From positions 62,001 through 126,000 of the forward strand of contig NW_003314295.1 in assembly GCF_000143415.4 (NCBI RefSeq): DNA of 64,000 nucleotides, given 5' to 3'. The notes under the pieces were generated by a model that saw only the letters and a list, made by a program, of their open reading frames with translations, ran no database searches and was not told where the DNA came from. The stretch comes from Selaginella moellendorffii. Taxonomy: Eukaryota > Plantae > Lycopodiophyta. Shown piece after piece: positions 1 to 25,413 of the stretch (its first letter is position 1; every line of letters begins with the position of its first letter). Both the position numbers and the translations under genes were made by a program.

Positions 1-1736
1 TTTGACTTGCTTACCTTACTCTTTGCTGGACCGCCTAAAGAAGGAATGCCTCTGTGAACAATGTACTCGCTGTCTATTACTCCAACGCTCTTGGACCGGT
101 CTCCCTGCCGTAAACATAGCTGTGAAGCATTGTAGGGAGGAACAGAAGTATACCTTTACACAATAACCAAGCTTGAAGTCCATTCCCCATCCGTGAACCA
201 AGTCGTTCTGAAAACACGTAGGTTAAGAACCTGAAGCTTATATGTATTAGAGACACACAGACCTGGATGAGGTGCCAGACACATTTCCATGCATCTCGTG
301 TAAAAACAGGGGCCATGCCTTCGACCCAGCTGAAAGGAAAAATTCAGGAAGAGAATGAAGAGCTTTTTACATACCCTGTACATGGTGGATCTGTGCTGTT
401 CTCAAAACACAATGTCCCAGTCCCTTTGGGCTTTAAACTCCTCCTACAAAAGCAAAGGAAATATTTGAGCCACCAAAGCATTATATATACGTACCTGTGT
501 ACCCTGTATCTCTTGCTTCGAATTGTTATACGATGGTGGACTTCCGACGCGTTGGGCTCTAGAGCAGGCTGTGAAATTTCTAGACGCTCGTACTTCATAA
601 TGGCCAAATATCTATAGAGCAGAGAAGAGAAAACAAGAAACCAAATAAGTTAGCAGAAGACGTGACTCAGGCGCTCACCTATCAACATGAAAATTTTCGA
701 CACCGAGATCTTCGTCCCAGACAAAAATGTACTCATACGGATCAACAATATCAGGGTGCAAAAAGCGCTTAGCAAACCACCTGTAGGCAGCCCGTCAAAT
801 TGACTCTAGTGCTTTATCGATACGTACCACTTCGTTTGATTTATTGCTACAACATGGATGGCACGACTACTCCAAGGTAACTCGTTCCACTTGTCCACGA
901 CACCGTCATAGTGAAACAGCATGATTGTGAAGTTGTGAGCGAGAAACTGCAAAGTTACACGGGGTCAGGACAACATCAGCAAAACGCAATTGATCAACAA
1001 CAACCTTCTGGACAATTCGGTCCACATAACGCTTCTGCTTTATGCCAGCCGCTACAGCGAGTAGCCCGTTGGGAACCTAAGAAAAGCTTGGCTATTGTTT
1101 GATCTTGGTCAACAACAGCACACACTACCTTCTTCCTGGAAACTCTTCCCAGCGGCTGGACCTCGAAGTTGGATGTTTGCTGGACAATTCCTCTCGGTAG
1201 TAAATCCTTTCCACCGCGCGGCCGATCCTCGCATGTTTCGAACAGTTCGGCCTGCCAAGCCAAGGATCAGAACATCCACAAGAGACACTCTAAAAGAATA
1301 AAAAAACCTGAATTTGAGGCTGTCCTATGACACCGACTCTTCTCCATTTCCAAAAGCTCTGCGAAACAAACAACCATAGCAAAAGAAAACTTGGAGAAAG
1401 AAGAAGAGATAGGAAGAACATACCCTTGGAAATGGATCGACGATAAAGTTGCTGAATATAAAGAGGGTGAACACGAGGAACGATAGCACCAAGAAAATGG
1501 ACTTGGTTCTACACAATCGAAGGCGTGATTTCCCACACTCGTGCTGCATCTTCACGTCGGCCTAGCAACAAAGGCGTCACGTTAGATCGATCGACATTTC
1601 GTGCAGCAAGAAAAGAAGGGGAAAAGAAAGCAGAAAACACTACCAAGTCCTCGAAATCTCTATGCTGCGATGAGTAATTCTTTTCCATCTGAGCCTTGGG
1701 CGTGCTGCGCAGCTTGCCACCGCCGCTCCCTTTCAT
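1..1736 (-). CDS. DUF707 family protein, multi-exon, 3' end runs off the window
   Basis: Spliced exons give KWWFAKRFLHPDIVDPYEYIFVWDEDLGVENF, LEISQPALEP, PPCTGYV, MAPVFTRDAWKCVWHLIQ and VHGWGMDFKLGYC, all DUF707 hallmarks. N-terminal TM segment IFLVLSFLVFTLFIFS. ATG at 1736 (MKGSGGG). Confidence 0.88.
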
Positions 1737-2319
1737 GGATTCCGACCAGCATTCCCTACCGCCGCTGCCACGCCCTTGCTCACGCTGCGATCGCGCACAT
1801 TCCCTTGCTCCACCACTTCAAATTCGAGCTATCCGTTTGCTCGGCATTATCTGCCCTACATTCGCGGCCGCGAATTCCCCCAAGAAATCAGTGAATCCAC
1901 CGATGCGCTGCTCGATCTAGCGCATCCCCACTCCCATTCTAGTACCCTAATCTACGCGCATCGCCGGCTTTGCGACACCAAAAGAAAGGCACTGGAGCTC
2001 TCCCGTCTTAAACGAAAACCATAACGAAAAGAACATAGAGCAAAGCGCCCAGCCTAGAGTTTCCCCAACACCCCGCGGTCGGGCCAAGAAATACCGGAGA
2101 CTTATAAGCCGGGCGGACTGACCACTCTATAACCTCACACACGACGGGACCTTTTTCCTCCGCCGCGATAGAAACGTTTAGCGTTGTCAGCCGACCCGGT
2201 CTAAAAAATACCGTGAAAGTCGCTTTTACCTGACACAGCGGTGGAACACGTGGCGAGCGGCGGAAAACGCTGCTGACGGGATTCGAGCGCGAGACCTGGC
2301 GGGAAAGATTCTAGGGCTT

Positions 2320-3208
2320 ATGGCGATGGCGATTATCATCCGGCTGCTCGGCATTACTTCCGCGCTGGCGATTGTTGCCGTGTGCCAGTTCCCAATCCCC
2401 CGCCGGTACGATGGATTCGCTTTCGGCAGCTATGGCGGCGTCCAGGAGCCGATTCTGGTGGAGGCCTTCTTCGATCCGCTGTGCCCCGATAGCAAGGATT
2501 CGTGGCCGGCGATCAAGCAGGTTGCGGAGGAGTATGGCTCGGAAGTGAAATTTATTGTCCATCCCTTCGCGCTACCGTAAGTGACACTCTTGGACTCTTG
2601 GACGGCAGAGAGATTCTCGTTTGTCTTGTTTCCAAGCATAGGTACCACCAGCAGTCGTTCCTTTCGGTGAGAGCGCTCCACATTGCGAATCATCTCAACG
2701 CGTCTCTCACGTACCCTTTGTTGGACTTGATCTTCGAGCACCAGGTTGGTTCTCTTATATTTATTTATTTTTTGTTCTTGTTCTTGATCTCTTTCGAATG
2801 TTTCGATGGTGACGAATTGATTAGGAAGAGTTTTCCAACGCGAACACTGCTGACAAAACAGCGTCGACGGTGATCGACGAGTTTTCCAGCCTGTTCGCGT
2901 CGCAGTTTGGCAGTGGCAACGAGGCGAAGAGCATTTTCAAGCAGGGATTCTATGACTCCTCCACTGATCAGGCGGGGCGCATCTCTTTCAAGGTAGACAA
3001 GAAGCTTTGATTGTCATGGCAAGAAAACTAAAGTCTTCGCGTACCTTGCACGCAGTATGGATGCTCGAGAGGCGTGACAGGCACACCGGTGTTTTTCGTC
3101 AATGGTGTCCCTCTCAGCAATGTAGATGCGAGCTGGGGAATCGACGAGTGGGCCAACATTCTCGATCCGCTGCTAGCAACTGGGCCTGGAATGAACGCAT
3201 TTGGATGA
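2320..3208 (+). CDS. Secreted DsbA-like thioredoxin-fold protein (CPDS motif), 4 exons
   Basis: Signal peptide, then PRRYDGF, VEAFFDPLCPDS, HPFALPYH and KYGCSRGVTGTPVFFVNG. GT-AG introns. TGA at 3206-3208. Confidence 0.88.
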
Positions 3209-3239
3209 ACTAGCACGGTAAGATGTATTGAAGACTACC

Positions 3240-4243
3240 TTAGAAGATTGGCATATGGACTTCTCTATACTTTCCATCGGTCGAGCATATGGTTCCAGCC
3301 TTCTCAAGCTCGTATAGAAGATCCACAAGCTGCTTTTGATCGCAATCCGAGAAGAAGGCAGCAATCTCCAGAAGCGATGCCTGTAAAGAACGCTTGCTTA
3401 TAGCCACGAATGTAAATCATTCTCGTTACCCCGTCTCTATCTCGAAGAAGATCCACGAGGCCTTGATCCAGTAACACCACCTTGCCTTGCGAAACTCTGA
3501 AGAACTCTTTCTTGATCTTCCGCGACTTTTGGAGCTCGGCCGACACAGCACGGAGTGTTTCGAGCTCGTTGGCGGAGTAGCCAGTCTCCGCAGCTGCCAC
3601 CGCTCTTATATCGTCAAACGAGAAGCCGCGATCGAGCATAGTACTGCATAGCTGGAGCTGTTCTCTCGTCACCTGGAGAGAAAAAACTTGTGAGCGGCGG
3701 CACATCAAGAGCAAGAGATCTACCTTGGAGCAGGAACTTGAGATCTTATCGAGATAGGCGCCTGTTCTAATCTGGCGAGTCCTTGGCAAATACTTGGACA
3801 CCTCGTTTGCGGCACTGAGATTGAGATTGACTTCTTTGCACAGCGCTATCCAGTCTACTGGCTTTCCACCATCAATCGCTGCCACAAGGTGGTCCACAAC
3901 AATCCCTCTGGGAGACTTGATTTTCTCCTGCGAGAAGGAAAACGAACAGCAGTCCTTTCTTGCCACGCAAAAATCTCTACTCACAGCGATAGCATCCAGC
4001 GAGAGGCCACCGAATTGCCAGAATTTCCAGACTTCCTCTGAGCTAACGGTGATCGCCTGTTAGCCGCATTATCAAATCCCTTCAAGAAATCCTTCCTACA
4101 CCCACCTGTTGAGAGCTTCTTCGTGCCAAAGCGACGTTTACACTGCGAGCGCAAGTGCTGCTAATGCTTACTCCGGAGAATCTCCCCGCGCCGGGCGGCC
4201 ATGCCATTCTCCTGGCAATCATCGTCGCGGCAGCTCGGATCAT
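3240..4243 (-). CDS. Stand-alone HTH_40 plus C-terminal winged-helix protein resembling the tail of plant WRN-like RecQ helicases; possible organellar presequence
   Basis: Spliced model: MIRAAATMIARRMAWPPGAGRFSG|AITVSSEEVWKFWQFGGLSLDAIA|EKIKSPRGIVVDHLVAAIDGGKPVDWIALCKEV...|...LVDLLRDRDG|ASLLEIAAFFSDCDQKQLVDLLYELEKAGTICSTDGKYREVHMPIF*. Last intron 3429-3381 (49 nt). Domain identity is from remembered family patterns. Confidence 0.6.
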
Positions 4244-4505
4244 CCCCCACCCCAAAACCCTAGCTCACAGTTTTTCAAATATCAATCTTCTAGATCAACG
4301 GCGGAATGTTCACTGAAATCGACGGCTGAGATTGCTCCCTGGTAAACCTAACAGAATTTTCTGCTGGCATTCCTTCTTGCTATGGCGGCGGGCGGCGGGC
4401 CTCGGGCCGGGAGGGCAAGAGAGCAGCTGTAGAAGAATTTAGGGCAGGGAGGTCCCATGAGAGGGCGCCGCGAGAATGCGTGAAACATGGTTCTAGGGCT
4501 GAAGA

Positions 4506-5583
4506 ATGCCGCCGAAGAAGAAAGGGAAGAAGGGCAAGAAGGGAAAGAAGAAGAAGAAGGAGCCCAAGCACGACGCTGGCTGGCAAAAGGTATGGAAGCG
4601 ATCTCCTTCCCTGGTAGAATCTCAGCTTTTGTTGCTTCGCCCAGGCTTTGATCAATGGAAAATGGGAGAGGCCTTTGGAAGCTCTTCCTGACCCTTTCCT
4701 CTGGCCGAGCTTTGGCGAGATCCGAGAGAAAATCCTCTTGAGTAGCCATCTGGTAAGAGCGAAAACATCGGTGCTTGATCGGTCCAATCCAACTTCATCC
4801 CGCAGATAAGCATTTTGTGGAGCGGATCTATTCACGACGATTTCATCCTAGAGCTTCTCAAAGTTCCTCGGCCAAACCTGGTGAGCATTCTCCTTGTGAT
4901 CTTTGTCTTGTAGATTGTGCTCAAAGCTAAGAGAATCGTTTTTTCACCAGCCAGACTACGCTTGAACTGAGGGGCACCAAATACTTAACAAGATTTGTCA
5001 TGTCCCCTCCATCAGTGTGCCCGGTGCTGGAAACTCTCGACCTCGCTTGTTGTCCCATCCTAGAGTACGTGCTCATCGAGGTAATGAAAGTCTTCTATCA
5101 TTTATAGCTTTGGATCGATCAAACCTTCCGATCTCTTGGCAGTCGACGAGCCTGGAATTCGTGTCCTTCAAACGCTGCGTTTCTCTCAAAAAAGTCCTCT
5201 TGAACGCCAAGAAGCTCAAGCGAATCGATCTCCACGAGACCGGTCAGCTGGACTGCTTGATGTTATGGAGTGATGCCATCGAAGAGCTTCACTTCTTCTG
5301 CAAGGAGATGACCCAGCTCGAGCTCTACTGTCCAAAGCTCACAAGAGTGCAAAGACCATCAATCAAGGTACTCGGTGGATGTTTCTTGTTCTTCATCTCT
5401 TTTCTCTTTTGTTCTTTGTTTTTTCAGGTAATACCACCCTTGTATCCTGTTCATCCGTCAGTTCTAGACATAGTTCGGGTTGACAACGCTCCCAGAGCGA
5501 AGGAGTACAGCCATCCTTTTGTGATAGAGGAGTACAAACCTTACGCGAGGAGCCCTTTCATACCTCAGGCGATTTTGCTGTGA
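4506..5583 (+). CDS. Leucine-rich-repeat protein with Lys/Gly-rich N-terminus (MPPKKKGKKGKK), about 6 exons
   Basis: GT-AG exons give TTLELRGTKYL, VCPVLETLDLACCPILEYV, TSLEFVSFKRCVSLKKV and LELYCPKL (Cys-containing LRR pattern). Stop at 5581-5583. Confidence 0.7.
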
Positions 5584-6639
5584 GGCTTCTTTTTTTTTTT
5601 TTTGTTCTTTCTTCCTACTTCGTGTTGCTGTGGATAGAAAAAAACCACTCTTGTTCATGCTTTGCTGTTTCCATTTTCCATTTCATGCTATAGATGCCCG
5701 CACTGGGATCTTAGCCTCTTCATACCAATCCATCACTTCATCAAGGCTACCATCAGCTATCAGCAGCAGCAATCATACAGCATTCAGACGAGCCGATCAC
5801 AAGAACTAGCTGAGATCCTCTTCCGTCGCAATGAACCAGCATCTTTGGAGTACCTTCCATCAACCGGCGACTTCCAGATAACAGGCAACATCCCTCTTCA
5901 TCAGCTCCAAACAATCAATAGCCGTCAGCAGAAGCTAAAACATCAACTTTGAGGCCATAATCATCGACACCAGTCACTCATCCATCATGGCTATCCATCA
6001 CCATCTTCTTTGCCGCTTCCATCCGTCCATTCCCTCACCATCTCCACATTGCCGCGGTTACCATTACCCGGCAACACATCCTCATCCATTTCACTTCCTG
6101 TGTGGTGTGCTAGACTTCCACTGGACGGGACGGGGGACCGATTGTGTGCAAGAGCCACAGGATGGGCACCAGATCAAGAAGATGGGCCGAGCACTCTTTC
6201 TCCACACCCTTCTTGGTTAAGTGTTTCAACAGCAATAACCATTACAACTCTTTTATGGTTCACCTGGAAAGCTAAGTGGTACCGGTTTACATTTCAAGGT
6301 CCAAAAGTTTCACAGCTGCTACAAAGCTATAGTCCTTGCTTGATTGTCTTAAAATATCGTAAAAAAAATTGAATGACGCAGGATAACAGTCCTGGTGCTG
6401 TGATCAGGAGTATCTATCAAGCGTCTCCACGGGCCATGCCTCGTTCATCCACAACTCCAGTAAGAAATTCTTGATTTTTAGTAATAAAATCTTGTCCTGA
6501 ATCATCACATACATCAAACGACAAGGACAGATTAGAATATTTTAGAATATTCTACATTTATCCATTTAGATTAATTTTGTGTATCTTGGGTAAGCAAGGT
6601 CGGGAAGCTTTAACTCTTTCCTGGAAGACGTTCTGTGGC

Positions 6640-7130
6640 ACAATCACTTCCTCTCGCGACAAGCCTTATGTGACAAACCTGCATGGTCGCGAAGCCAAAA
6701 GTGGAAGTTTTCAGGGTGTGGTGATCCTTGCAATAGTTGCCTCAAAACGATTGCTCGTGGCTGAAGCAGAGAAAGAAAAGAGGTAAAAAGAAAAAACACC
6801 AAATACTCATGTCCAGCTCCATGTGTCTATTGCGCTCTTGGGAACGCAAATGGTAACTAAGCCGTTCGAGAGAGACGCTCTCACCTGCTTCATGTCAGCA
6901 CTGGAGGGAAGCTTAAACTTTGTTTGTTGGAAGTTGGCGGTGGTCTTAAAGTTCCCGGCCCTGTATTGTCCACATTCACTTCCTCTCGTGACAAGCCTGA
7001 TATTGAGAAAACGTGAAAGTTTTCAGGGACATACCTGGAACTTCTGACACAAAGAATGTGGTGATGCTTGTCATCTACAATAGTTGCCTTGGGACATTTG
7101 CTCGTGGCTGCAGCAGAAAAGGAAAGGAAA
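6640..7130. repeat. Diverged direct duplication of about 150 bp (6640-6790 vs 6972-7130), probably decayed gene fragments
   Basis: Shared blocks: tcacttcctctcg(c/t)gacaagcct, aagttttcaggg, tgtggtgat(c/g)cttg, caatagttgcct, ttgctcgtggctg(a/c)agcaga. Confidence 0.65.
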
Positions 7131-7184
7131 TTAGCTCGTGAGTGCTGGGAACAGTAATGCAGTATCATCCTCTTGGGCATCACG

Positions 7185-8560
7185 GGAGGAGCTATATATT
7201 AACTATATATATATTTTTTTTTTATATTATCTCGTGGAGGAGCTAGATATTAACTTTTAGTAGAAATAATTTTTAGTAAAACTAATATAGCCATTTAATA
7301 AAACTATAAGTTGAAATAGCATTACTATCATAAATTAGTAGTGAATTTGTTTAATGCTCAGTCTCATTGCTATCCCATCATTCGTAAGACCACAACAATC
7401 AATATGTATTTAAGTAAGGATTCTTGATCACATGACGTGAACAATTAGATTATAATTCATTATAAATCATCTATTGGAGATACTCTTGGTCCCTCTAGTC
7501 TTCAGTCTTCAGAATCTTGAGGATAGTTTGCTAAAGCTTGAGCAAATTCCTCGTAGCATTATGCAATTGTTTTTTTTGTTGATGTTTTTTTCACAAAATC
7601 AAATTTTTATATCACAAGAAAGAAAAATATTTTTGATACATTATTTAGCACAAAAGACATCTAAATAAAGAAAAGCCTTTAGCAAAAGGGGTCTTAGATC
7701 ATTAAAACTTTTTCTTCTTTTAGAAAATATACTAAAAAGGATATTAAAGAGAATTTAGCTAAATGGAAAGTAATGTTGAAGAACGAAATTAAAATGTTTT
7801 TTATGTTAACTCTTTGAGATTATATAGAAGATATATTATACTACATTTGAAAAAAAAATAGTAACATTACTATACACTAAATATAAATTAAAGATGTTTA
7901 AACTTCCATGTATTTTTTTCTACCATCACTTGTATATTTTTGTCAATTATCCCAACAAGGCTTGTGGTCTTTAACTTTTTATATATGCATTTTCTTTTGT
8001 GAATTTTTGAGTGTTACAAATTTTTCTTTTTCAAGATTCCTAGTAGATTATAATCATGTTTTTTTAATTCCATTTTCTTAATTATAGAAACTTTTTTCAA
8101 GAGTGTGTAAAAAATCCTTATAAAAATAATATCATAACCTAAAATATATTTATATTAAAATATAATTATTACATATTGAATCCCTTTCCTTATTTGTTTT
8201 AATTTGGTTATGTGATGTCAATGACTTATTCAATTAGCTAAAATACAAAAAACAAAAGTGTGAAATATTTGTTATCACAAAAGTAAGTGTAGCAAAGGTC
8301 TATTATTTATTTATAGCAAATAAAATATTTTTAAAAATTTTATATTAAAAATCACTAATATTTTAATCCTTTATATAATTTTAAAATAGATATTTAAGTA
8401 GTGAAGTTTATAATGTGAAATGTGTTTATATATAAGCTTATAACACAATTTAAAAATATTTTTAGGCATTTTATAAATAATTTTAATATTATCATTTATC
8501 ATCATTAACTCTCCATTTAAAATTTTGCTATTTTATAATTATTAATAAATGATTTTATTC
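7185..8560. mobile_element. Very AT-rich non-coding block, likely transposon relic
   Basis: Sharp drop in GC content. Duplicated ggaggagcta(t/g)atattaact at its left edge. No credible ORF and no identifiable termini. Confidence 0.35.
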
Positions 8561-8614
8561 CTGTTTGTTTCCTTTAAATATTCTAGGTTTTCTTTTGGGT
8601 TGTGTGCAAGGAAA

Positions 8615-9484
8615 ATGGCTGTGGGCTTTCAAAACCAAGGGAATTCTTGTTCAGCCAACAGTGCTTTACAGTGCGTTGCTCACACGCCGGAGCTCTCTAG
8701 CTTCTTCTTGAAATCAGACAGCGTAAGAGGTGAGATAGCAATCGAGTTTAGGAAAGTGGTGAGGGTGATTTGGAATAACGCAAGCAAGTCTGTAAAACCA
8801 GGGCCAAAGCTGACAAATCCGAGCGTCCAGCCCGACGCACAGGAGTATCTCGATTTTCTTTTGGGTGCCCTGGATCAAGAATTCAAGAAGCAAGAGAATC
8901 CTCCTAAAGGACAAAAGGTGCGACCAGAGCTCCCCTCTCCAGTCGCAGATTTCTTCGAGGGCCAAACCAAATCCACAGTGAAATGCCCGAAGTGCTCCAA
9001 CATGGTCTCCTCCACGCCTGACTCTTTCACCTCTCTCTCGCTGCCAGTCCATGAGACGGCGCAGCCGGTTTCTCTGGAATCATGCATCCGGGAGTACACC
9101 AAAGACGATGTTTTGGATTCCTGGCACTGCCCAAAGTGCAAGAGAAACCAAAAGGACGCTGTCAAGAAACTGGAGCTTGGGAAGCTCCCACGGAATTTGA
9201 TCCTCCATTTGGCAAGGTTTAAGTGCGATTCTTCGGGGAGTGTGGAGAAGATCGACACCACGGTGGAGTTTCCACAGATTTTGACACTTTGGGAACAGGA
9301 GTACAAACTGTATGGATTGATTAACCATATGGGGGACTCCGACTATGGGCACTACACGGCGACCATCAAACTTCCAAATGGAAAGTGGTACAGCTTTGAC
9401 GATGAGGTGGTGGAAGAGATTTTTGAGCTATCGAGGTGCTCGAGCGATGCATACATTTTGTTCTATCACAAAACAAGTGTGTGA
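8615..9484 (+). CDS. Intronless ubiquitin-specific protease (peptidase C19), catalytic domain only, 289 aa
   Basis: Cys box GFQNQGNSCSANSALQC, QPDAQEYL, two CPKC zinc knuckles, LPRNLILHLARF, His box YKLYGLINHMG...GHYTA, WYSFDD and AYILFY. Confidence 0.9.
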   Translation: MAVGFQNQGNSCSANSALQCVAHTPELSSFFLKSDSVRGEIAIEFRKVVRVIWNNASKSVKPGPKLTNPSVQPDAQEYLDFLLGALDQEFKKQENPPKGQKVRPELPSPVADFFEGQTKSTVKCPKCSNMVSSTPDSFTSLSLPVHETAQPVSLESCIREYTKDDVLDSWHCPKCKRNQKDAVKKLELGKLPRNLILHLARFKCDSSGSVEKIDTTVEFPQILTLWEQEYKLYGLINHMGDSDYGHYTATIKLPNGKWYSFDDEVVEEIFELSRCSSDAYILFYHKTSV

Positions 9485-9500
9485 GAATTACAGTACATAT

Positions 9501-10142
9501 TTACACGATATCTTGGCTTGCGTCTTCTTGTCGCGCTGCTCTTGTTCTACAGCTCCAACATTCCAGGAGGAGAGCATTCACGATCATGGACAATCCGAAT
9601 CCCGCAAAACCGGCCAGCGAAATCGACAAGATTGGGTTCAACTTCATCTGGATCATGGATTGAAATAAGAGCTAAAAAAGTTTTAAGAGAGTGATCTTAC
9701 CCAACTGTAGAAAACATGCGCAAATAGTATGACAAAACCGACCTGAAAGATGGCAAAGAGCCACATACAACGCCGCCTCACTGTGCGTCGAAAGAATCTA
9801 TTCTTACAAACAGGAGCTCGAGAGAAAGAGAGAGAAACGAAATCTTACCAAGCGTTGATGCTGTGATGGCAGTGAGCATTCCAAACATGAAGAGCTAGCA
9901 TCAATGCTCGAGGGCCCTTTCGTCTCACCTGTAGTAGGCAACAAAGAAATCCATCCAAGAACTTCGCAAATCAATCGAAATCATCAGAGAATTATCACCA
10001 GTAGCTGCTCGAGGAGGCAAAAGTACGTGAGCATGCTGATCATGACGAGCACGGGAACGTCATGCCAAATCCTGGAAGAACACCATGGAATCTACAAAAC
10101 TATAGAGTGAGATAGACGAATCTACCTGTTGAGAGCACTCAT
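9501..10142 (-). pseudogene. Disabled 3' transmembrane exons of a RING-CH (MARCH-type) E3 ligase
   Basis: Exons RIWHDVPVLVMISMLTYFCLLEQLL, VRRRCMWLFAIFQVGFVILFAHVFYSW and MKLNPILSISLAGFAGFGLSMIVNALLLE lie after an in-frame TAA (10145-10143). The 80-nt exon at ~9849-9928 ends in the wrong phase, implying a deletion of about 11 nt near 9889. Confidence 0.75.
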
Positions 10143-11936
10143 TTACGCCATTTGAGCTTGCTGGAGAACTTGAGTTTCAGCGTTGGTATTGTTTTGGTTT
10201 TGCTGGAGCCTGACGAGCGTGACGGGGAGATTGACGACCTCCTGGCCACAAACATCGCACTCGCGGTTGCCTCGAATCCCAAACCACTTGAGAGCGCACT
10301 CCTCGTGAGCCAGCGCCAGCTCCCCTTTGCAGCTACACTCGAGCTTGAGCGTCTTGCCCTCCTCGCCCAGATCGCACAGGCAAATGCGGCACACTGCTTC
10401 CTCCTCGGGGATCTCCTCGTCCTCGCCGTCTAAAAGTTTTGAAACTTTCAGATCATGGAACCATGGTCTCCATGAACTTGATCATAGGAAGCTTACGTAC
10501 CTTGGGTGTCGTTGGCATGGTCAGTGTCTTGGGCTCCATTGTCTGCTTGTGAAGTTTCCCGGGGACGAGGACGAGGAGTGGTCGGCTTGACGAGAAACGT
10601 TCCGGAGTAAAGCCGGGTGAGCTTCTTCTCCTTTTGGTGACCATCGAGCGCCGACTTGGAGCGTTTGATCTGCTTGCCCTGCGAAGACGAGATGACAAAG
10701 TTGACGATGAAAGAAAGAAAGAAAAGTTCTACCTTTGATGACGAGATCAAATTTTCTCTAATGGCATCTGGACTCACTGCCGCGGCCCCTGTCGACGAAG
10801 AAGACGACGGAGACGCGGACGAAGAAGACGATAGCGTGAATCGCAATGGAAGAGACACTGTTCTTGCGGAGCGGGGCGTGAGGAGCCGCATGAGCGAGAA
10901 GTTTGATCGGGGCGTTGCTGCTCCTGGGGTGTTGGAGATGGATGGCGGTGGCGGCGGCTGCGGCGGAAGAGCATTGACGCAGGAGTCAGCGAAGCTATCA
11001 CCTGAGAGAGATAAACAAGCCAACCTTGTGACAAGTAGATATAAAACCACGGGAACGGCCGTAAAGCCTCGTTGGAGAGCGGCAAAATTGAGAAGCGATG
11101 GTGCCAAGTGACCAGCCATTTTGTCAAGGCTGCAAAGACAATGGAGCTGAGAAGCCATAAATGAATCTCGAAAAAACGAACCTGTTACTTATGCTCAGTA
11201 ACGCTGCAACACCCAGCATGAGAAGCGTCCCCTCTTCCCTTTTGCAAACTTTAGAACAGGAAAAGCGAAAAAAAAAGAGAGAAAATCTTTACCATTGAAT
11301 CTGTGGCCACCAGGAAGAATTCCCTCCAGGAATCGCCACCGAAGGGGAGTTCTTCTCACTGAGATCCAACACGACACCATCGCCATCGGTGGAAAACTTT
11401 GGGACCTTGTCACAAGCCTTGGACGAGTTCCAAGGAAGCAAAGGAAGAACCGAGACAATCTTGCCCGGGGGCTCGTCGGATTTCTTCACCTCCACCTCCG
11501 CCGGGTGATCCAGCGCGAGGAAGTAGCCGCCGAGAGTGACCACCACGATTCCCATGAGCCCCTGCGAGCTCGGGAGCTCGTTGATGATCACATAGCTCGT
11601 AAAAACCAGAAGAACTGGAGTGAAAGCTAGATAAGGAACAGTGACCGAGAGAGGGGAGACGTGGAGAGCACGCTGGTACATGAACCCCACCAGAGCCTTG
11701 ATCGCCGCGGTGACGAGGAGCGCGGCGACGTACTCGGTGTCCAGCCGCGTCAAAGAGAAGAGATCGAAGCCGCCGGAGAGGAGCGCCATGGAGGAGAGGA
11801 GCAGCGCGTCCAGGAGAGCCACCAGAGCTACGAGCTCGCGGTCCGAGAAGCGCTGGGACGCCCATTTCCTGCTGGCATCGATGCAGCTGTGGCCGATCGC
11901 GGCGCCCGCGGCGTACGCGAATCCTGCCCAGATCAT
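10143..11936 (-). CDS. Chimeric EamA/DMT transporter (5' part) fused to RING-CH E3 ligase, predicted 520 aa
   Basis: Exons 11936-11293, 11238-11182, 11129-10733, 10678-10501 and 10429-10143 join in frame. EamA motif [19 protein letters not shown]...NELPS, then SNSLDK, then RING-CH-family [18 protein letters not shown] and C4HC3 domain CRIC...[16 protein letters not shown]...W...CDVC. The exon 2 acceptor is uncertain. Confidence 0.65.
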
Positions 11937-11960
11937 TTCTCTGCTCTTCTCCGGAGCGAG

Positions 11961-11990
11961 CGATCGATCGATCGATCGATCGATCGATCG
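11961..11990. repeat. (GATC)n microsatellite in the 5' region of the EamA-RING gene
   Basis: cgatcgatcgatcgatcgatcgatcgatcg. Confidence 0.9.
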
Positions 11991-12273
11991 CTAGGACGAT
12001 CGCTGCATTGTCGGCGAGGGCGCGATTGGTGCCACCAGAATACCTGCTCGGTTGACAATCACAGCATCGCGGCTCCTCTGCCTCCGGGGACGACCTTATG
12101 GAGACCTAATTCGCCCTAATTTCTTTTTTTCTTTCTTTCACAAGGGATGGGTGAGTCTTTTTTCATGAAAAACTCTTCACCTAATAACAAATAATGTAAT
12201 GAACTTGTTCCAAAAACAAAATTACTTCTATTCACTAATGCTTTTCATTTATCATCCATTTTTTGCTGATCGA

Positions 12274-13299
12274 TCAGCATTTAAGAGTTTGGGCACCTCC
12301 AAAACCAATGTGATTTGTGGTGAATGTGAGATTGTCTTGATTTCGAATTTTACGTACTTCGTCCTTCCATACAAGCATTGCCTCCTCCTTTGCTGTCATA
12401 GATGCTTCCTCAATTTCCCGCTCCAACTCCATGGCGAAATCATTCTCCTCATCTACTACTGGGATGGGAAATTCTTCCTCCATTTGCCGCACCAGCTCCA
12501 TGGCAAAATTGTTTTGCTCCTCGCCCAAATCGAATCGGGTGCCCTGGCCCTGTTGGTCGCTGAACTCCCCGCTGAACTCCTCAAGACCCAGTAGTAAATC
12601 TAGATCATCACCATCATCGACATTGAAATCCTTGAGAAAGTTCTTCTCCTCGTCCTCCACAGAAGGACCCTTGTCCTCCAAATCCATTTTACACCACAAT
12701 TTCTCAACCTCCTGGAAGATCTCCTCGTCTTGCACGTATCCCTCGAGGTCACAGGCGTTGACTGGCAACGACTGATCCCGGACCATGAGTTGACTAGGGC
12801 ATTGACCTGTAGTGCTTGGTGATGGCCTCGCCGTTCTCCTCGAAGCTCCGCGACTTGCCCTGTGCGGGGATGCACAACCGCGACTCCCACTGGTTGCGGC
12901 CGATGGAATCATTGACGAAGGCAACATCTTGCGAGGAAGACACTGCCCCCTTGACTTGTTCTGCTGCTGCTCCTTCTTGGGTCTCTTCCTTGGACGACCG
13001 CCATCTTCTTTCTTGGCTCGTTTCGCTCGTATTGTGCCACCCAGGGTGAAGTGCCGTTTGCACACCGTGCACTTGTAGCGCGGCTGGATCAGCATGTGGT
13101 TTTCGAAATAGTCAAACTTGGTGACTGCCGAGCTATCGCAGCCGTGTGGGCAGAGCGGGTGCTGCTGTCGCAAGAAGGCCATGAGCTCCCCCACGCTCCC
13201 AAACGTAACAAAAGCCTGCTGTGATGTCTGTGAACCAAAAACTGGGTAGTTTTGGAGATGGTGGATGTCCTTGACTAGCACGTTTCTCATTTCTCTCAT
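12274..13299 (-). CDS. Intronless divergent Dof-like zinc-finger protein with acidic C-terminus, 341 aa
   Basis: CPHGCDSSAVTKFDYFENHMLIQPRYKCTVCKRHFTLGGTIR matches the Dof pattern CPRCxSxxTKFCYYNNYxxxQPRxFCxxCRRYWTxGGxLR. NLS-like PRKRPKK. Duplicated acidic E..N.FAMEL.R..EE motif. Confidence 0.75.
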   Translation of the reverse strand: MREMRNVLVKDIHHLQNYPVFGSQTSQQAFVTFGSVGELMAFLRQQHPLCPHGCDSSAVTKFDYFENHMLIQPRYKCTVCKRHFTLGGTIRAKRAKKEDGGRPRKRPKKEQQQNKSRGQCLPRKMLPSSMIPSAATSGSRGCASPHRASRGASRRTARPSPSTTGQCPSQLMVRDQSLPVNACDLEGYVQDEEIFQEVEKLWCKMDLEDKGPSVEDEEKNFLKDFNVDDGDDLDLLLGLEEFSGEFSDQQGQGTRFDLGEEQNNFAMELVRQMEEEFPIPVVDEENDFAMELEREIEEASMTAKEEAMLVWKDEVRKIRNQDNLTFTTNHIGFGGAQTLKC

Positions 13300-13344
13300 T
13301 CTTACTGACTACCAAATAATCTAGGTATGCTGTTAAGGGCGATG

Positions 13345-13417
13345 AAAATATACTTTACATTCAAACAAATATTCTGATACAGTATCAGAATATTTGTTGG
13401 AATGTAAAGTATATTTT
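13345..13417. repeat. 73-bp near-perfect palindrome (36-bp arms, 1-nt centre, 1 mismatch) flanked by ATG direct repeats
   Basis: aaaatatactttacattcaaacaaatattctgatac-a-gtatcagaatatttgttggaatgtaaagtatatttt. Confidence 0.9.
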
Positions 13418-13799
13418 ATGAGTAAAATCTGCGCAAGACCTCATGGCAATGCACAATCCATGAGGCATCCTGTTTTAACTTAAACTTCTGTGAAAAGCTT
13501 TTTAAGGCTTTAGTATGGAAGAGACTTTAGACCACTTAATCCCACAACAAGATTATCGTCTGGATCAGATTTCCTGCTGAACCATACAGAGTTTACAACA
13601 AGGGCAAAATCTATTTTGTTTTTGTCGCGGGCTAGCACAAACTCGTGCTGGGCGGAGCAGCAGGAGCAAGCTGGTTGTGGCGAAATTAAGCTTAAACCAA
13701 AAGAGGTGGATTCCTGAGAGATGAGGAGAGGTGAAACTTTCAGTGACTGGTACTTTTTTCTTGTGAGTAGCAAGAGGCGACCTTTTCGTCTGGTTTAAA

Positions 13800-16700
13800 C
13801 CAAAACTAATCTATTGTTTATTCAAACCTTTATGGAGGTAAGACTCTTTAATATTTTAGAAACTTTTCACCCTGATAACTTTAGTTTTGGACTCAACTTT
13901 GACTAACCTCAAAGCTATGTTTTCATTGCCTTCAGTTTAGCCTAAAAAAAAGTTCATAAGAGAGAATGATAATGACTATTTGAACCAATATATTAATTTT
14001 TATAGTCTCCAGCAAAAATCATGCCTAAGAAAGATCCACTAGTGCCATGCTAAATAGTTAGATATTTTCTATTTATAGTAATCTTAGAGGAGGTTTATTT
14101 TATTGGCAGTAATATAGTAATAACTTATGGTAACCACCAATATGCTAATATCAACTCAATGTGTAATTTTAAATTGCTAATATGACTCACTCAAGACCTC
14201 AAGTATAAACTTGTATAAATAGTACATATCAAATTCCATCTAATGAGCCCAAGTGAAAGCCATATAATATGGTACAAGATGATATGAATTGATATAACAT
14301 AACACATATCTAAGAACATTTGTGAAGCTATAGCAACCAAATGTGTATCCATTTAGATAATTATTTTCATCTCCACAAATGTAATGATATTAGTTGCCAA
14401 ATCTTGTTAATAGTACTTGTTGAGACTGATATTTTCATACCAAATATAGCACACATGATTTTGACTTTATAATGAATTATTAGGATAACTATAAAGTGAA
14501 ACATAACCCTTTGGACATAACAACTTTAACATATGTGGTTTTGACTATACCATATAATGAGTTACAACAATGAAACAGAAATTAACCCTTAGACACATGT
14601 ACAAGGGTAATGTAAAATTTAAATTTCAAAGCCTTAAACCACTAAATGAAGGGACAGAATCAAATTCCTTAGTGTATGATGAAGGTTAAAAGTATAAAGA
14701 AATACATAAAATAATTTTAGTGTAAAATATAAATCCCTAAGTCCCAAATGGATTTAAAGGCATAATACATGAAATAAAAAGCACTCAAAGAAAAAGCATG
14801 AAGCAATCAATAAATAAATCTCAAAAAGGATATAAAAATGATTGAGTATTGTAATATATAACAAGTGTCATGAGATATATGAAAGTGTTGAAACCAAACC
14901 CCTAAAGCCCAAAAATTTGAAATGGAACAATGTTAAAGCATCTTAGACCACTAAGAAACCAAGTGTTAAACATATCTAAAGCCAAATATATCTAGGGCTA
15001 TATATATACATAAAGGGTTTAGTAAATCCTTATAAAATAGGACTCTAAAGGGATTAATGTGACAAAAACAAGTTATACCCATGTAATGATAATATAAACA
15101 TTGGGAATCTAAAGCTAGAGTAAATATAAATATTAAGTGGGATAACTTGGTGAAATGTTTAAAGACCAACTCTAGCTCATTTAAAAGATTAAATAATCAA
15201 TACTCCTAATCTAAATGTGCATGGCATTACTTATTTGATACTTTATATGGCTCATTAGAGCTTTTCTAGCTATATAGCTAAGGTACCCTACTCATTAAAT
15301 GTGGTAGGAGAAGTTGCAAAATACCACTTTAAAGTCCTTGACTATTGAAAGGAAAAAAATGGTCATTTTAGTTAGTAATTAAGGGTATAGTTATGGTCAA
15401 TAGGATTTAGTGGATAGCTATTTAGGCCTTGACATAGTGGCAATATTAGCAAGTACTACTATACTTAGTAAAGAAAATTCCTTTATACTTTAAAGGATCC
15501 TAAGGACTAATGGTCGAGAAGTATTGGAGGATAATATTCCCCTATACTTTGAAGGATTCATGATATGGCCATTCATGAAATGGATGGTCAAGGGACAGGT
15601 TTGCGATAATAGTGGTTTTGTATTGGTAATGAGCTAATAATAATGAACTTTACTTTGAGTATATTAGTGGTATTTTTGGGTGTCTAAAATGGGATTTAAA
15701 TATAAAGAGCACTTAGACAAAATACAAAGTCACTATGGCTTCAAAACCATTTTTGGGGTGATAGCAAATGCCCTAAGTAAAGATTTAGTGAGTGATAGTT
15801 AAAGATATGGTTAAATGACTAAAAAAGAATGAAAAATTTAGTCATTTACATTTAAAGTATTTAAAATATTAACACAAAAACTAATATAAAATATATATAT
15901 TATTTAGCATACTAGTGGCCTAACACTAGAATATGAGTACACCAATTAATATAGTATGAAGATTATATTGTAATTATGAACAAAAGAGAGAGAAAAAGAG
16001 AAAATCTTCATTATATAATTTCACACTCAAGAGAGTCTTTAGTGTGAGTGGAGTCATATTGAGGCTAATGCAAGATTGGTGCAAGTTTCCAATCAAAGTT
16101 CCCTCTTGTTTCAAGGTTTTTAGATCTCAAATGTCTTCTTTCCAATAAGTGTAAACACTTATGATTTAGTGCAAAAATGACCAAGATTTTTTCATTTTTC
16201 TCTCAATGATTGTTTCTCTAAGCTGGAGTTCTCAGAGTTGAGCTGCTTAGAGTCATAACATGCAAGTAACATGTGCATCACAATCCAATATGGATTCTTT
16301 GACAACTGATTCTTTGAGCATATGCTAGTTTGTTCCTTATTATGTGTGTTTTGCCCCCAACTTTTGTTTGATGTATGTTATTGCCATTTTCATGTCTATC
16401 TGAGTCTCATGAAAACTATTTTTCTCATAATAGCGCAAATTGCCAAGCTATCAAAAGCTTTCATCAAATCTGTTATGTTGAGCTTATAGAACTCACCCTC
16501 TTTTGTGTGAGTCTCAATATGCCATAATTTGATTGCATATTCCATGAGCTAGTTTGTTCTCTTAAAACTTGTATTTCCTGAGCATGAGTGAGTTCTCTTA
16601 GCCCAATTCATTTCTTTTGACTATCTTTATTGCATCATCTCTGCATAAACATCTCCTTGGCCATCATTTGAGCCACATCTTAGGTAAATCAAGACGTGCT

Positions 16701-22169: not shown

Positions 22170-23999
22170 TCAACTTGGAAGTAAAGTTTTCGTATCGCTC
22201 ATCCTCGGAGATCTTTGAGACTTGGCAAAGGATCCATCGGTGTAGAGGCTGGAGAGCAGCACGTAGGCCTGGGTCGCGCCATCGCCGCAGCTCAGGAGCT
22301 TCCTGGCAGCGCTCTCGCCATGGCGAAGGCTCTCGTGTCCCCGACTAGCGCCTAGCAGCGACGTCCACTCCAAGATGTCTGGAACAAAAGGCATGCTCGC
22401 GATGAGATCTCTGGCTTGATCCAGGTACCCGGCTCGTCCCAGGAGATCCACCATGCAGCAGTAGTGCTGCTTGCCTGGTTGGAGCCCGTGATCCAAGCCC
22501 ATGGACACGAAATGCGATCGCCCATCGTAGAGCTTCCCCTTTCTGCTACAAGCGACGAGGATCGAGAGGTAGCACGTCTCGTCGGGTGATTCCAGGGTGC
22601 CCATCTCGTAGAACACGGCGCACGCCTCGGCGAAGTGCTCGCCGCCCTGGGCCGAATAGGCCCCCAGCATCGCGCTCCAGGAGATGATCCCGCGCTCCGG
22701 CATCCTAGCGAAGAGCAGCGCCGCGTGGTCCAGGCGCCCGCTCTGGGCAAATGCGGTGATCATCGCGTTTCTCGTCACGGTGTCGCGCTCCGGCATGAAA
22801 TGGAAGGTTTCCTCCGCGCAGTCGATTCGCCGGCACTGTGCGTATGCGACTAGCATCGTGCTCCATGACACAACATCGCGCTGTGGCATGGAATCGAAGA
22901 TGTTCTTGCTCGGCTCCATATGCCCGTTTTGGGCATATGCTGCGAGCATGGCATTCCAGGTCACTAGGTTTTGCTGGGACATTTGATCGAACACCGTCTT
23001 GGCCTGCTCTACATGACCGGCCTGGGAGTACGCAGTGAGCATTGCCGTAGAGGAGACGAGATCTATCAGTGGCATTCTTGAGAGGGTACGCTTCGCCTCG
23101 TCCAGATCCCCGGTCTGGGCATATCCCGAAAGGATGCAGTTAAACGACACGAGATCGCGCTGCGGCATCGCGTCGAAGATCTGCCTCGATTCTGCAATGC
23201 GCCCGCGCTGAGCGTAGGCGGCCAGCATCGCAGTAAATGCAACGAGGTTCCGCTCAGGCATCTGATCGAACAAGGTCCTGGCCTGCTCGACCTCGCCTTG
23301 CCGGGCGAGTCCTGCCAGCATCGCCGTGAAAGACACCACATTCCTCTCGGGCATTTCGGAGAAGACTCTCTTCGCTTCCTCGAGCCGGCCTGCTTGGGCA
23401 TTTGCAGAGAGGATCGCAGTCCAAGACACAAGATTTCTCTCTGGCATGCGATCGAAGAAAGCTTTGGCTTGCTCGAATTTTCCCTGCTGGGCGAATCCAG
23501 CGACCATGGCCGTCCAGGACACGACATGGCGCTGCGGTACTTGCTCAAACAATCTCTCGGCCTTATCCAGATGCCCACTTTGGGCATATGCTGCAAGCAT
23601 GGCATTCCACGAAACCATGCTCCGTTCGGGCATACCTTCGAAGATCTCCTCGGCTCTCTCAAGGCTCTTGCTTTGCGTGTAGGCACTGAGCATTGCATTC
23701 CAGGCAACGAGATTGTGCGCGGGCATGGAATCGAAGAGCGACCTCACTTGCTCCTGGTTCCTGTTGTGGGCATAGGCTTGCATCATGAGAACCCAAGAGA
23801 AGAGGTCTCTGGAGGAGCCCAGTGCGTCGAAGACCTCCCGCGCGCGGCCGGAGCTGCCGCAATTGCCATACATCTCGATCAGCTTGTTGTGGACGAAGGC
23901 ATCGTCCGGGGCGATGGTGGGCTGCAGCTGGGAGTGGATTCGCTCCGCCATAGCCAGCGTCTTGCACGAGTAGATGAGCTCCAGGCATTGCTTGCTCAT
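22170..23999 (-). CDS. PLS-class PPR protein with long SS-motif array and truncated E domain, no DYW
   Basis: About a dozen consecutive 31-aa repeats (MPERNLVSWTAILSANAQAGRLEEAKRVFSE), then HYCCMVDLLGRAG, MPFVPD and AYVLLSSLY. Intronless. Confidence 0.93.
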   Translation of the reverse strand: MSKQCLELIYSCKTLAMAERIHSQLQPTIAPDDAFVHNKLIEMYGNCGSSGRAREVFDALGSSRDLFSWVLMMQAYAHNRNQEQVRSLFDSMPAHNLVAWNAMLSAYTQSKSLERAEEIFEGMPERSMVSWNAMLAAYAQSGHLDKAERLFEQVPQRHVVSWTAMVAGFAQQGKFEQAKAFFDRMPERNLVSWTAILSANAQAGRLEEAKRVFSEMPERNVVSFTAMLAGLARQGEVEQARTLFDQMPERNLVAFTAMLAAYAQRGRIAESRQIFDAMPQRDLVSFNCILSGYAQTGDLDEAKRTLSRMPLIDLVSSTAMLTAYSQAGHVEQAKTVFDQMSQQNLVTWNAMLAAYAQNGHMEPSKNIFDSMPQRDVVSWSTMLVAYAQCRRIDCAEETFHFMPERDTVTRNAMITAFAQSGRLDHAALLFARMPERGIISWSAMLGAYSAQGGEHFAEACAVFYEMGTLESPDETCYLSILVACSRKGKLYDGRSHFVSMGLDHGLQPGKQHYCCMVDLLGRAGYLDQARDLIASMPFVPDILEWTSLLGASRGHESLRHGESAARKLLSCGDGATQAYVLLSSLYTDGSFAKSQRSPRMSDTKTLLPS

Positions 24000-24069
24000 T
24001 AGATCGATCGCTGGGCATTATAGGCGCTCTCTTCCAAAGCAAGGCTAGATATGAAGCTCCCGTTTGGGA

Positions 24070-25413
24070 ATGGAGCGCGAGGCACTGGCACGGATCATAC
24101 GATCTTGCGGAGAATCCAGGAATTTGATCCAGGGGAGGTTGGTTCACGCGCGAATTCTCGAGCAGCAGCTCCTGGATCGCTACCTCGAGAATCTGCTCGT
24201 CCAGATGTATGGGAAGTGTGGCAGCCTGGGTGATGCGCGGACGGTGTTCGAGCGGATCCACGCTCCAAACGCGTTCTCGTGGAGCATCATCATGACTGCG
24301 TACGCGCAGAGTGGCGATGTTGGGCAGACGAAGGAGATCTTCGACCGGATGCCCGATCGCGGCGTTGTTGCCTGGACTTCGCTACTATCAGCAAATGCCC
24401 GTAATGGGCATATGGAAGAAGTTAAAGCTACCTTCGCGAGAATGCCAGAGCACAGCTTAGTCGCATGGAATGGAATGATCACAGCGTTTGGACAGAATAG
24501 CCAACTTGGAAGAGCGAAAGGATGTTTTGATCGGATGCCTGGAAGGAATACCTCATCATGGAACGCAATCATATCGGTGTTTGCCCTTCACGGGGAAATC
24601 TCCACAGCTCAGCAAGCCTTCGAGCGGATGCCGGAGAGGAACTCCATGGCCTGGAACCCGATCATCCACGCGCTAAATCTACAGGGCGATGTTTTTACCG
24701 CGAGGATGGTCTTCGAGAGCCTCCCGGAGTGCTGCAAAGTCTCCTCCTCGACGATGATCTCGGGCTATGCGCAGGCCGGGCATCTCGACCAGGCCAAAGC
24801 TCTCTTCGACTCTTTGCCACACCCGGACGAGTACGCTTGCTCCTCGATGCTCCAGGCCTTCGCCAAGGCCGGGGACGTCCTCGGCGCCAGGGAAACCTTC
24901 GACAAGATGCCAGAGCGCTGCCGCGACACTCCCTCCTGGAACGCGATGCTGGGGGCGTATGCGCAAAACGGGCTTGGCGAGCGGGCGCTGGAGCTCTTCG
25001 CAGCGATGATCCACGACGGGATCGCTCCCAACGAGATGACCTTCTCGACAGTGCTGCATTCTTGCAGCCATCTCGGAAGGTGGCGAGAGGCGATTGCATA
25101 CTTCCGCTCGTTGAGCGAAGATCACGGACTGGTGCCGGATGTGGAGCTCTACTCGAGCATGATTGACGTCCTGGGCCGGAACGGGAGGATTTGCGAGGCC
25201 GAGGAGCTTCTGGCGAGCATGCCCTTTGCTCCAAACCAGGCCGCCTTTGCGTCGCTGCTCGCGGCTTGCCGGCTCTACCAGGACTCGGGGCGGGGATCGC
25301 TCGTCGCGGGGAAGTTTGCTCGCCACCTTTGCGAGCAGCCGGCAGTGGAATCCATCGCCGCGGAGCCGTACGTCCAGCTTGCCAACATTTACAGGGGCAT
25401 GAACGCTCCCTGA
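24070..25413 (+). CDS. PLS-class PPR protein with E domain, no DYW
   Basis: LVQMYGKCGSL, 31-aa SS repeats, YSSMIDVLGRNG, MPFAPN and PYVQLANIY. First ATG at 24070. Confidence 0.92.
   Translation: MEREALARIIRSCGESRNLIQGRLVHARILEQQLLDRYLENLLVQMYGKCGSLGDARTVFERIHAPNAFSWSIIMTAYAQSGDVGQTKEIFDRMPDRGVVAWTSLLSANARNGHMEEVKATFARMPEHSLVAWNGMITAFGQNSQLGRAKGCFDRMPGRNTSSWNAIISVFALHGEISTAQQAFERMPERNSMAWNPIIHALNLQGDVFTARMVFESLPECCKVSSSTMISGYAQAGHLDQAKALFDSLPHPDEYACSSMLQAFAKAGDVLGARETFDKMPERCRDTPSWNAMLGAYAQNGLGERALELFAAMIHDGIAPNEMTFSTVLHSCSHLGRWREAIAYFRSLSEDHGLVPDVELYSSMIDVLGRNGRICEAEELLASMPFAPNQAAFASLLAACRLYQDSGRGSLVAGKFARHLCEQPAVESIAAEPYVQLANIYRGMNAP

Follow-up and report, generated by a model that had tools for sequence, protein, structure and literature searches.

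A probable decaying duplication-junction chimera of EamA transporter and RING-CH ligase genes in Selaginella moellendorffii

Locus and data sets

In this study, we describe a 64,000-nt stretch of Selaginella moellendorffii DNA (hereafter, the window) in which the 5' part of an EamA transporter gene is joined, on the minus strand, to the 3' part of a RING-CH (RINGv) E3 ligase gene. The window corresponds to GL377599.1:62001-126000 of assembly GCA_000143415.2 and matches the fetched locus L006 at 100%. The assembly includes both haplotypes of the sequenced plant (PMC3680112). The window was compared with the parent locus on GL377590.1 (L004), a sister junction copy on GL377568.1 (L005), and the loci on GL377583.1 (L001) and GL377584.1 (L002); coordinates prefixed with L are local to each locus. 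Read evidence consisted of assembled contigs from three RNA runs and from run X1, the kind of which is recorded as 'DNA?' and was not confirmed. A literature search found no paper on this locus.

The EamA part and the RING-CH part

The first EamA exon, read from the ATG at 11936, was 99% identical to XP_024535395.1, a 352-aa S. moellendorffii EamA protein with orthologues of equal length in conifers and green algae. The exon matched the Pfam EamA profile (PF00892) significantly, with 31.1 bits against a cut-off of 28.2. Exon mapping confirmed that the EamA coding sequence breaks off two helices into the second EamA repeat, where residue 268 (of 352) is followed by the GT at 11024-11023, as the initial annotation had read it. 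The acceptor AG 11240-11239, on which that annotation relied for exon 2, was used in RNA contigs. Residues 269-352 of the intact protein were absent from the whole window. An RNA contig from the intact gene leaves the window at 11025 and goes on into parental EamA exon 4, which is absent here. In Pfam searches the intact protein carried two EamA stretches (residues 5-140 and about 218-350) and the window product only the first; the window product thus does not have both of the five-helix repeats of an EamA/DMT transporter.

The RING-CH part retains an intact C4HC3 domain, which scored 48 bits against a cut-off of 21.6 (RINGv, PF12906) and has the spacing C-x2-C-x14-C-x-C-x7-H-x2-C-x12-C-x2-C in translation. 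The remnant is without its first 66 codons. A loss of the 5' exons had been proposed initially; the 5' part is indeed missing, but the loss does not go beyond exon 1, 150 nt of exon 2 and the promoter. Coordinates of all mapped features are collected in Table 1.

Table 1. Features of the chimeric locus and of the genes carried with it, in window coordinates
Feature	Position	Strand	Evidence or remark
Duplicated segment A: Dof, EamA exons 1-3, first 48 nt of EamA intron 3	10977..13867	-	Matches L004 9413-12455; blastn 95.5-96.7% identity; sharp homology ends
EamA exon 1 (first EamA repeat and loop)	11293..11936	-	Pfam EamA E=3.2e-07; RNA joint at 11292
EamA exon 2	11182..11238	-	RNA joints 11237->11292 (cut +1) and 11129->11182
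EamA exon 3, final EamA exon present, ends at residue 268	11025..11129	-	tblastn 100% to residues 234-268 of the intact protein
Hybrid intron, 67 nt: 48 nt of native EamA intron 3 (11024-10977), filler C (10976), 18 nt of RINGv exon 2 with recruited CAG (10975-10958)	10958..11024	-	Comparison of parents; RNA joint; NCBI models P0035 and P0037
Out-of-frame tail after the splice, 61 residues, Arg/Pro-rich, stop TGA 10776-10774	10774..10957	-	Translation equals the C-terminus of XP_024538101.1
Duplicated segment B: RINGv codon 67 to end, UCH, about 1 kb beyond	7482..10975	-	Matches L004 944-4499; blastn 94% identity
RINGv-derived exon (3' part of parent coding exon 2)	10733..10975	-	Alignment to L004; RNA joint at 10732
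RINGv-derived exon	10501..10678	-	RNA joints
RING-CH domain exon with window-specific TAA 10145-10143	10126..10429	-	Pfam RINGv E=1.4e-12; CAA in L004 and L005
First membrane-region exon of the ligase itself	9999..10071	-	RNA joints; frame as in parent
Membrane-region exon with window-specific 11-nt deletion between 9891 and 9890	9849..9928	-	11 nt present in three RNA runs, L004 and L005
Membrane-region exon	9701..9780	-	RNA joints
Last RINGv exon, parental stop	9501..9647	-	RNA joint; alignment
UCH (ubiquitin C-terminal hydrolase) copy, open reading frame, convergent with the RINGv remnant	8549..9484	+	Pfam UCH E=7.7e-47
Dof zinc-finger gene copy, open 341-aa reading frame	12274..13299	-	Pfam Zn_ribbon_Dof E=4.3e-13

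Structure of the junction

The parent locus on GL377590.1 carries, in order, ribosomal S8e, RINGv, UCH, GST, PCRF, Dof, EamA and a PDDEXK gene. Both parents are intact there (EamA, 352 aa; RINGv, 437 aa), and the parental paralogs anticipated by the initial annotation were thereby found. Two segments of this locus recur in the window in permuted order: segment A is followed by segment B in the window, and B by A in the parent. A single unmatched C at position 10976 separates them as filler. The parental EamA intron 3 is 60 nt long, with an internal CAG at the place equivalent to the window AG at 11003-11002. The breakpoint took its last 12 nt, acceptor included; the nearest pyrimidine-rich CAG downstream is found 18 nt into the RINGv-derived sequence. 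On the other side, RINGv is broken at codon 67, within coding exon 2; contigs of X1 and of the three RNA runs depart from the window exactly at 10975 and continue with parental RINGv exon 2.

These breakpoints revise several parts of the initial annotation. The 23 nt from 11024 to 11002 had been taken there for two intron halves fused together; native EamA intron 3 begins with these very letters, unchanged, and the RINGv sequence does not resume at the AG at 11002 but starts at 10975. The deletion invoked to fuse the two genes gives way to a duplication junction, broken in EamA intron 3 on one side and in RINGv exon 2 on the other. Two other origins were considered and rejected. A heterozygous deletion allele of an intact locus disagrees with the permuted homology to the parent locus and with the tandem array on GL377568.1, and a retrocopy or processed pseudogene disagrees with the retention of all parental introns in both halves.

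Some further observations concern the EamA part. One X1 contig fuses position 11726 in EamA exon 1 to 10804 in the RINGv-derived exon, skipping 921 nt. Its depth was like that of neighbouring contigs and the joined sequence occurred in none of the fetched loci; either a contig artefact or a further rearranged copy may account for it. Just upstream of the EamA start codon, positions 11954-12004 hold a palindromic (GATC)n microsatellite. Its length varies between copies, and many contigs of all runs break or diverge there.

The tandem array on GL377568.1 and other copies

The same junction, including the filler base, was found on GL377568.1. The order of genes on this scaffold is GST, PCRF, Dof, EamA 5' part, RINGv 3' part, UCH, GST, PCRF, Dof, which constitutes a tandem array, and an intact 352-aa EamA gene (XP_024522619.1) is also present. 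Such an order is what a tandem duplication of an 11.5-kb unit leaves behind when one break falls in EamA intron 3 and the other in RINGv exon 2. GST-PCRF-Dof copies stand on both sides of the junction on GL377568.1 but do not flank the window junction. The window holds only 6.4 kb of the junction structure (7482-13867), and its flanks are unique and unrelated to the parent locus. The block may have arisen as a secondary, dispersed copy or as an allele that underwent rearrangement. Capture of the Pack-MULE or Helitron type was considered and dismissed, as no terminal repeats or target-site duplication were found at the block ends.

An assembly artefact, in which a mis-join of reads from the duplicated locus would have produced the junction or put the 6.4-kb block in its present place, is extremely improbable. 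All X1 contigs do show another letter at several window-specific positions, and the unrelated sequence beyond 7482 and 13867 would also suit a mis-join. However, contigs drop minor variants, so missing window letters prove nothing. Within 1.5 kb, 22 substituted positions as well as indels set the window copy apart from that on GL377568.1 as a distinct molecule, and the chimeric splice described below is present in RNA. Since the same junction occurs on two independently assembled, diverged scaffolds, it is not a mis-assembly, and the mis-joining that might have undone the initial annotation was not borne out.

Two more degenerate copies of the Dof-EamA block were found at L001 7180-8966 (GL377583.1) and L002 7041-9012 (GL377584.1), with 72-97% identity. 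The genome has therefore seen repeated duplication of the Dof-EamA block. Both copies share an internal deletion equal to window 11541-11115, and both adjoin PCRF and a gene for RNA polymerase Rpb2. Dof-like and EamA-like fragments on these scaffolds are combined in the JGI models SELMODRAFT_412494 and SELMODRAFT_413050. In the GL377568.1 array, an insertion of ~2.9 kb lies between UCH and GST (L005 6867-9778); it is absent from L004 and from the window. An alignment discontinuity at L004 4495-4590 is close to the end of the window homology at L004 4499.

Splicing and predicted products

An RNA joint from 10957 to 11025, found in one contig of run X3, matches removal of the 67-nt hybrid intron. 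The joint cannot stem from the parent locus, because RINGv lies upstream of EamA there. NCBI models with the same splice, each of 329 aa, exist for the window (XP_024538101-3) and for GL377568.1 (XP_024524368-9). No 23-nt intron was used, contrary to the splicing considered in the initial annotation; the observed splice removes 67 nt (11024..10958).

The 67-nt splice shifts the RINGv frame by one base, and the ligase part becomes 3' untranslated sequence with six introns. The predicted spliced product has 329 aa, with seven EamA helices and a 61-residue tail in place of the last 84 EamA residues. As the TGA that ends this tail has six introns downstream of it, we infer that the chimeric message is a target of nonsense-mediated decay and is unstable.

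The unspliced reading is in frame throughout, with 520 codons from the ATG at 11936 to the TAA at 10145 and a stop ~30 residues behind the RING domain, exactly as first annotated. Retention of the 67-nt intron was not seen in the contigs, which cannot exclude retained transcripts. The in-frame, transporter-anchored E3 ligase that had been proposed needs this retention and found no support.

Lesions in the RING-CH remnant

The RINGv remnant in the window is not an open, complete translated gene: its 5' codons are gone, the domain is out of frame after the observed splice, and two lesions follow behind the domain. Both had been noticed initially, and both proved to be real. The TAA at 10145-10143 could also have been a mere part of a GTAAAT donor (10147); this was rejected, as RNA joints place the donor at 10125. 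With the donor used at 10125, the TAA is therefore exonic and in frame, at a codon that reads CAA in the parent and in the GL377568.1 copy. The frameshift located near 9889 corresponds to an 11-nt deletion between 9891 and 9890 that is private to the window.

A separate use of the remnant, starting at an internal ATG and giving a soluble 207-aa RING-CH protein without membrane anchor, is very unlikely. An in-frame ATG is available at 10891, and gene models of this kind have been predicted by JGI, with 343 aa for the equivalent model on GL377568.1 and 137 aa for the RINGv model in the window. However, no promoter or separate transcript start was seen, RNA contigs over the RINGv part bear the parental letters and not those of the window, and the window-specific changes in this part comprise two nonsynonymous and one nonsense against one synonymous change.

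Substitutions in the chimeric copies

Codon changes were classified exon by exon in a three-way alignment of the window copy, the GL377568.1 copy and the parent on GL377590.1. In the RINGv exons, the window copy carried 1 synonymous, 2 nonsynonymous and 1 nonsense change, the GL377568.1 copy 2 synonymous and 7 nonsynonymous changes, and the parent/stem branch 7 synonymous and 3 nonsynonymous changes. In EamA exons 1-3, the ratio of nonsynonymous to synonymous changes was 3:1 in the chimeric copies versus 1:3 in the parent/stem branch. On these small counts, the pooled ratio was 13:4 (plus the frameshift) in the chimeric copies versus 4:10 in the parent/stem branch (Fisher's test, p = 0.012). 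The EamA and RINGv halves point the same way, towards a relaxation of constraint in the chimeric copies.

Two possible functions of the locus were weighed. The first is a functional in-frame chimera, in which the 67 nt would be retained and the seven EamA helices would replace the ligase's own membrane anchor. The 520 open codons obtained by retention, the intact C4HC3 residues of the RING-CH domain and its open frame in the GL377568.1 copy speak for it. Against it, the sole junction-spanning RNA evidence and all NCBI models remove the 67 nt and thereby shift the frame, chance alone puts one in three junctions in frame, and nonsynonymous changes outnumber synonymous ones by 13 to 4 in the chimeric lineages. 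In addition, a seven-helix piece of a 5+5 transporter is unlikely to fold, and the TAA and the 11-nt deletion are recent and private to the window copy, as neutral decay predicts. We consider such a function highly improbable, and there is a similarly slim chance that a fraction of transcripts retains the 67 nt and yields a real EamA-anchored RING-CH protein. If retention were true, the GL377568.1 product would be full length, at ~656 aa, and that of the window would measure 520 aa, the ligase's own anchor being disabled; the locus would then show a young E3 ligase with a transporter anchor just as it arises, and the two copies would stand for alternative fates.

The second possibility is that the 329-aa truncated EamA protein is itself functional, e.g., in regulating the intact transporter or as its dominant-negative partner. 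The same structure is annotated on two scaffolds, the splice occurs in RNA, and the EamA part is free of stops and frameshifts in both copies. However, the excess of nonsynonymous changes in the EamA exons of the chimeric copies, an undetectable second EamA repeat, a tail made of frameshifted RINGv sequence and a stop upstream of six introns, with the message decay expected from it, make this function unlikely.

Proposed origin of the locus

Taken together, the locus is most probably a decaying duplication-junction chimera. According to the proposed scenario, an 11.5-kb unit containing RINGv, UCH, GST, PCRF, Dof and EamA would have been tandemly duplicated in S. moellendorffii, with breakpoints 48 nt into the 60-nt EamA intron 3 and at RINGv codon 67. 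The new junction reads Dof, EamA exons 1-3, RINGv from codon 67 to its end, and UCH, while intact parents of both genes persist. The window holds a 6.4-kb copy of this junction piece in another genomic setting. The duplicated EamA promoter would drive transcription into the RINGv remnant, and a cryptic CAG, 18 nt into the RINGv coding sequence, would serve the broken intron as acceptor and give the 67-nt intron and the frame shift. Untranslated in the spliced message, the RINGv remnant would be unconstrained, and its window copy would have gained the nonsense codon and the 11-nt frameshifting deletion.

Several observations weigh against this scenario. The chimeric splice was present as one short contig in one of the three RNA runs, with 28 nt on its shorter side, and this contig is assignable to the window and to the GL377568.1 copy alike. 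No GST or PCRF was found in the window around the 6.4-kb block, no inverted or direct repeats pair the block ends at 7482 and 13867, and the flanks of the block match nothing in the other fetched loci. Decay has not reached every copy, since the sister copy on GL377568.1 keeps an open RINGv frame. Low numbers of substitutions limit the comparison of constraint, and instability of the message is deduced from the position of the stop. The young double pseudogene that was the other option in the initial annotation fits the locus, with its partial duplicates of intact parents, frameshifting splice, private lesions and relaxed constraint.

Comparison with known chimeric genes

Sdic of Drosophila melanogaster is a chimeric gene formed at a tandem-duplication breakpoint. 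Chimeric genes that arise at such breakpoints have been surveyed in Drosophila yakuba and D. simulans (PMC4069613, PMC5460883). Judged by its structure, the present locus follows this standard route, in which a tandem duplication that ignores gene boundaries gives rise to a chimeric transcription unit. As in the Drosophila cases, the downstream parent contributes the 5' part and the upstream parent the 3' part behind it, intact versions of both remain at the outer edges, and the promoter of one parent is inherited. Unlike in Drosophila, the rescuing splice shifts the frame and leaves no chimera at the protein level, and the window copy lies outside the tandem array and bears extra disabling lesions.

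Plant membrane-anchored RING-CH ligases are relatives of MARCH proteins. The parent gene has the C4HC3 domain followed by hydrophobic exons, and the window keeps this domain; unlike in functional ligases of this type, it sits in the 3' untranslated part of the spliced message. EamA proteins (drug/metabolite transporters) consist of two five-helix repeats. Window exons 1-3 are 99% identical to the 352-aa Selaginella protein, but encode only the first repeat and two helices, with 84 residues swapped for 61 frameshifted ones.

In an early-diverging vascular plant, the locus provides a base-resolved case of a segmental duplication making a chimeric transcription unit. Recruitment of a coding CAG as acceptor would alone decide the absence of a fusion protein. 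Three states can be compared: the parents are intact, one chimeric copy is open, and another carries a nonsense codon and a deletion. The locus raises no new biological question. For annotation, the 329-aa EamA, 137-aa RINGv and 653-aa Dof-EamA models in the window most likely describe a decaying duplicate and not new functional genes.

Carried-along genes and neighbourhood

The complete Dof and UCH genes of the block still have open frames. The UCH copy showed 89% identity to XP_024535525.1 of the parent locus; 258 of 265 aligned residues were identical, and one 24-residue gap accounts for the shortfall. Dof copies contain different numbers of an acidic internal repeat unit and measure 341 aa in the window, 336 aa in L005 and 393 aa in L004 (10001-11182). 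Just upstream of the Dof reading frame, at 13345-13417, there is a 36-nt inverted repeat with 97% complementarity and a 1-nt loop; it is kept in the parent locus at L004 9877-9949.

JGI models fuse neighbouring genes at these loci. The 653-aa model in the window (L006 12160-14685) combines Dof with EamA, and SELMODRAFT_442559 (518 aa, L004 11496-13571) merges the intact EamA gene with a downstream open reading frame. A few kb from the duplicated block, positions 22170-25413 hold two long single-exon reading frames with PPR repeats, one on each strand (609 aa and 449 aa).

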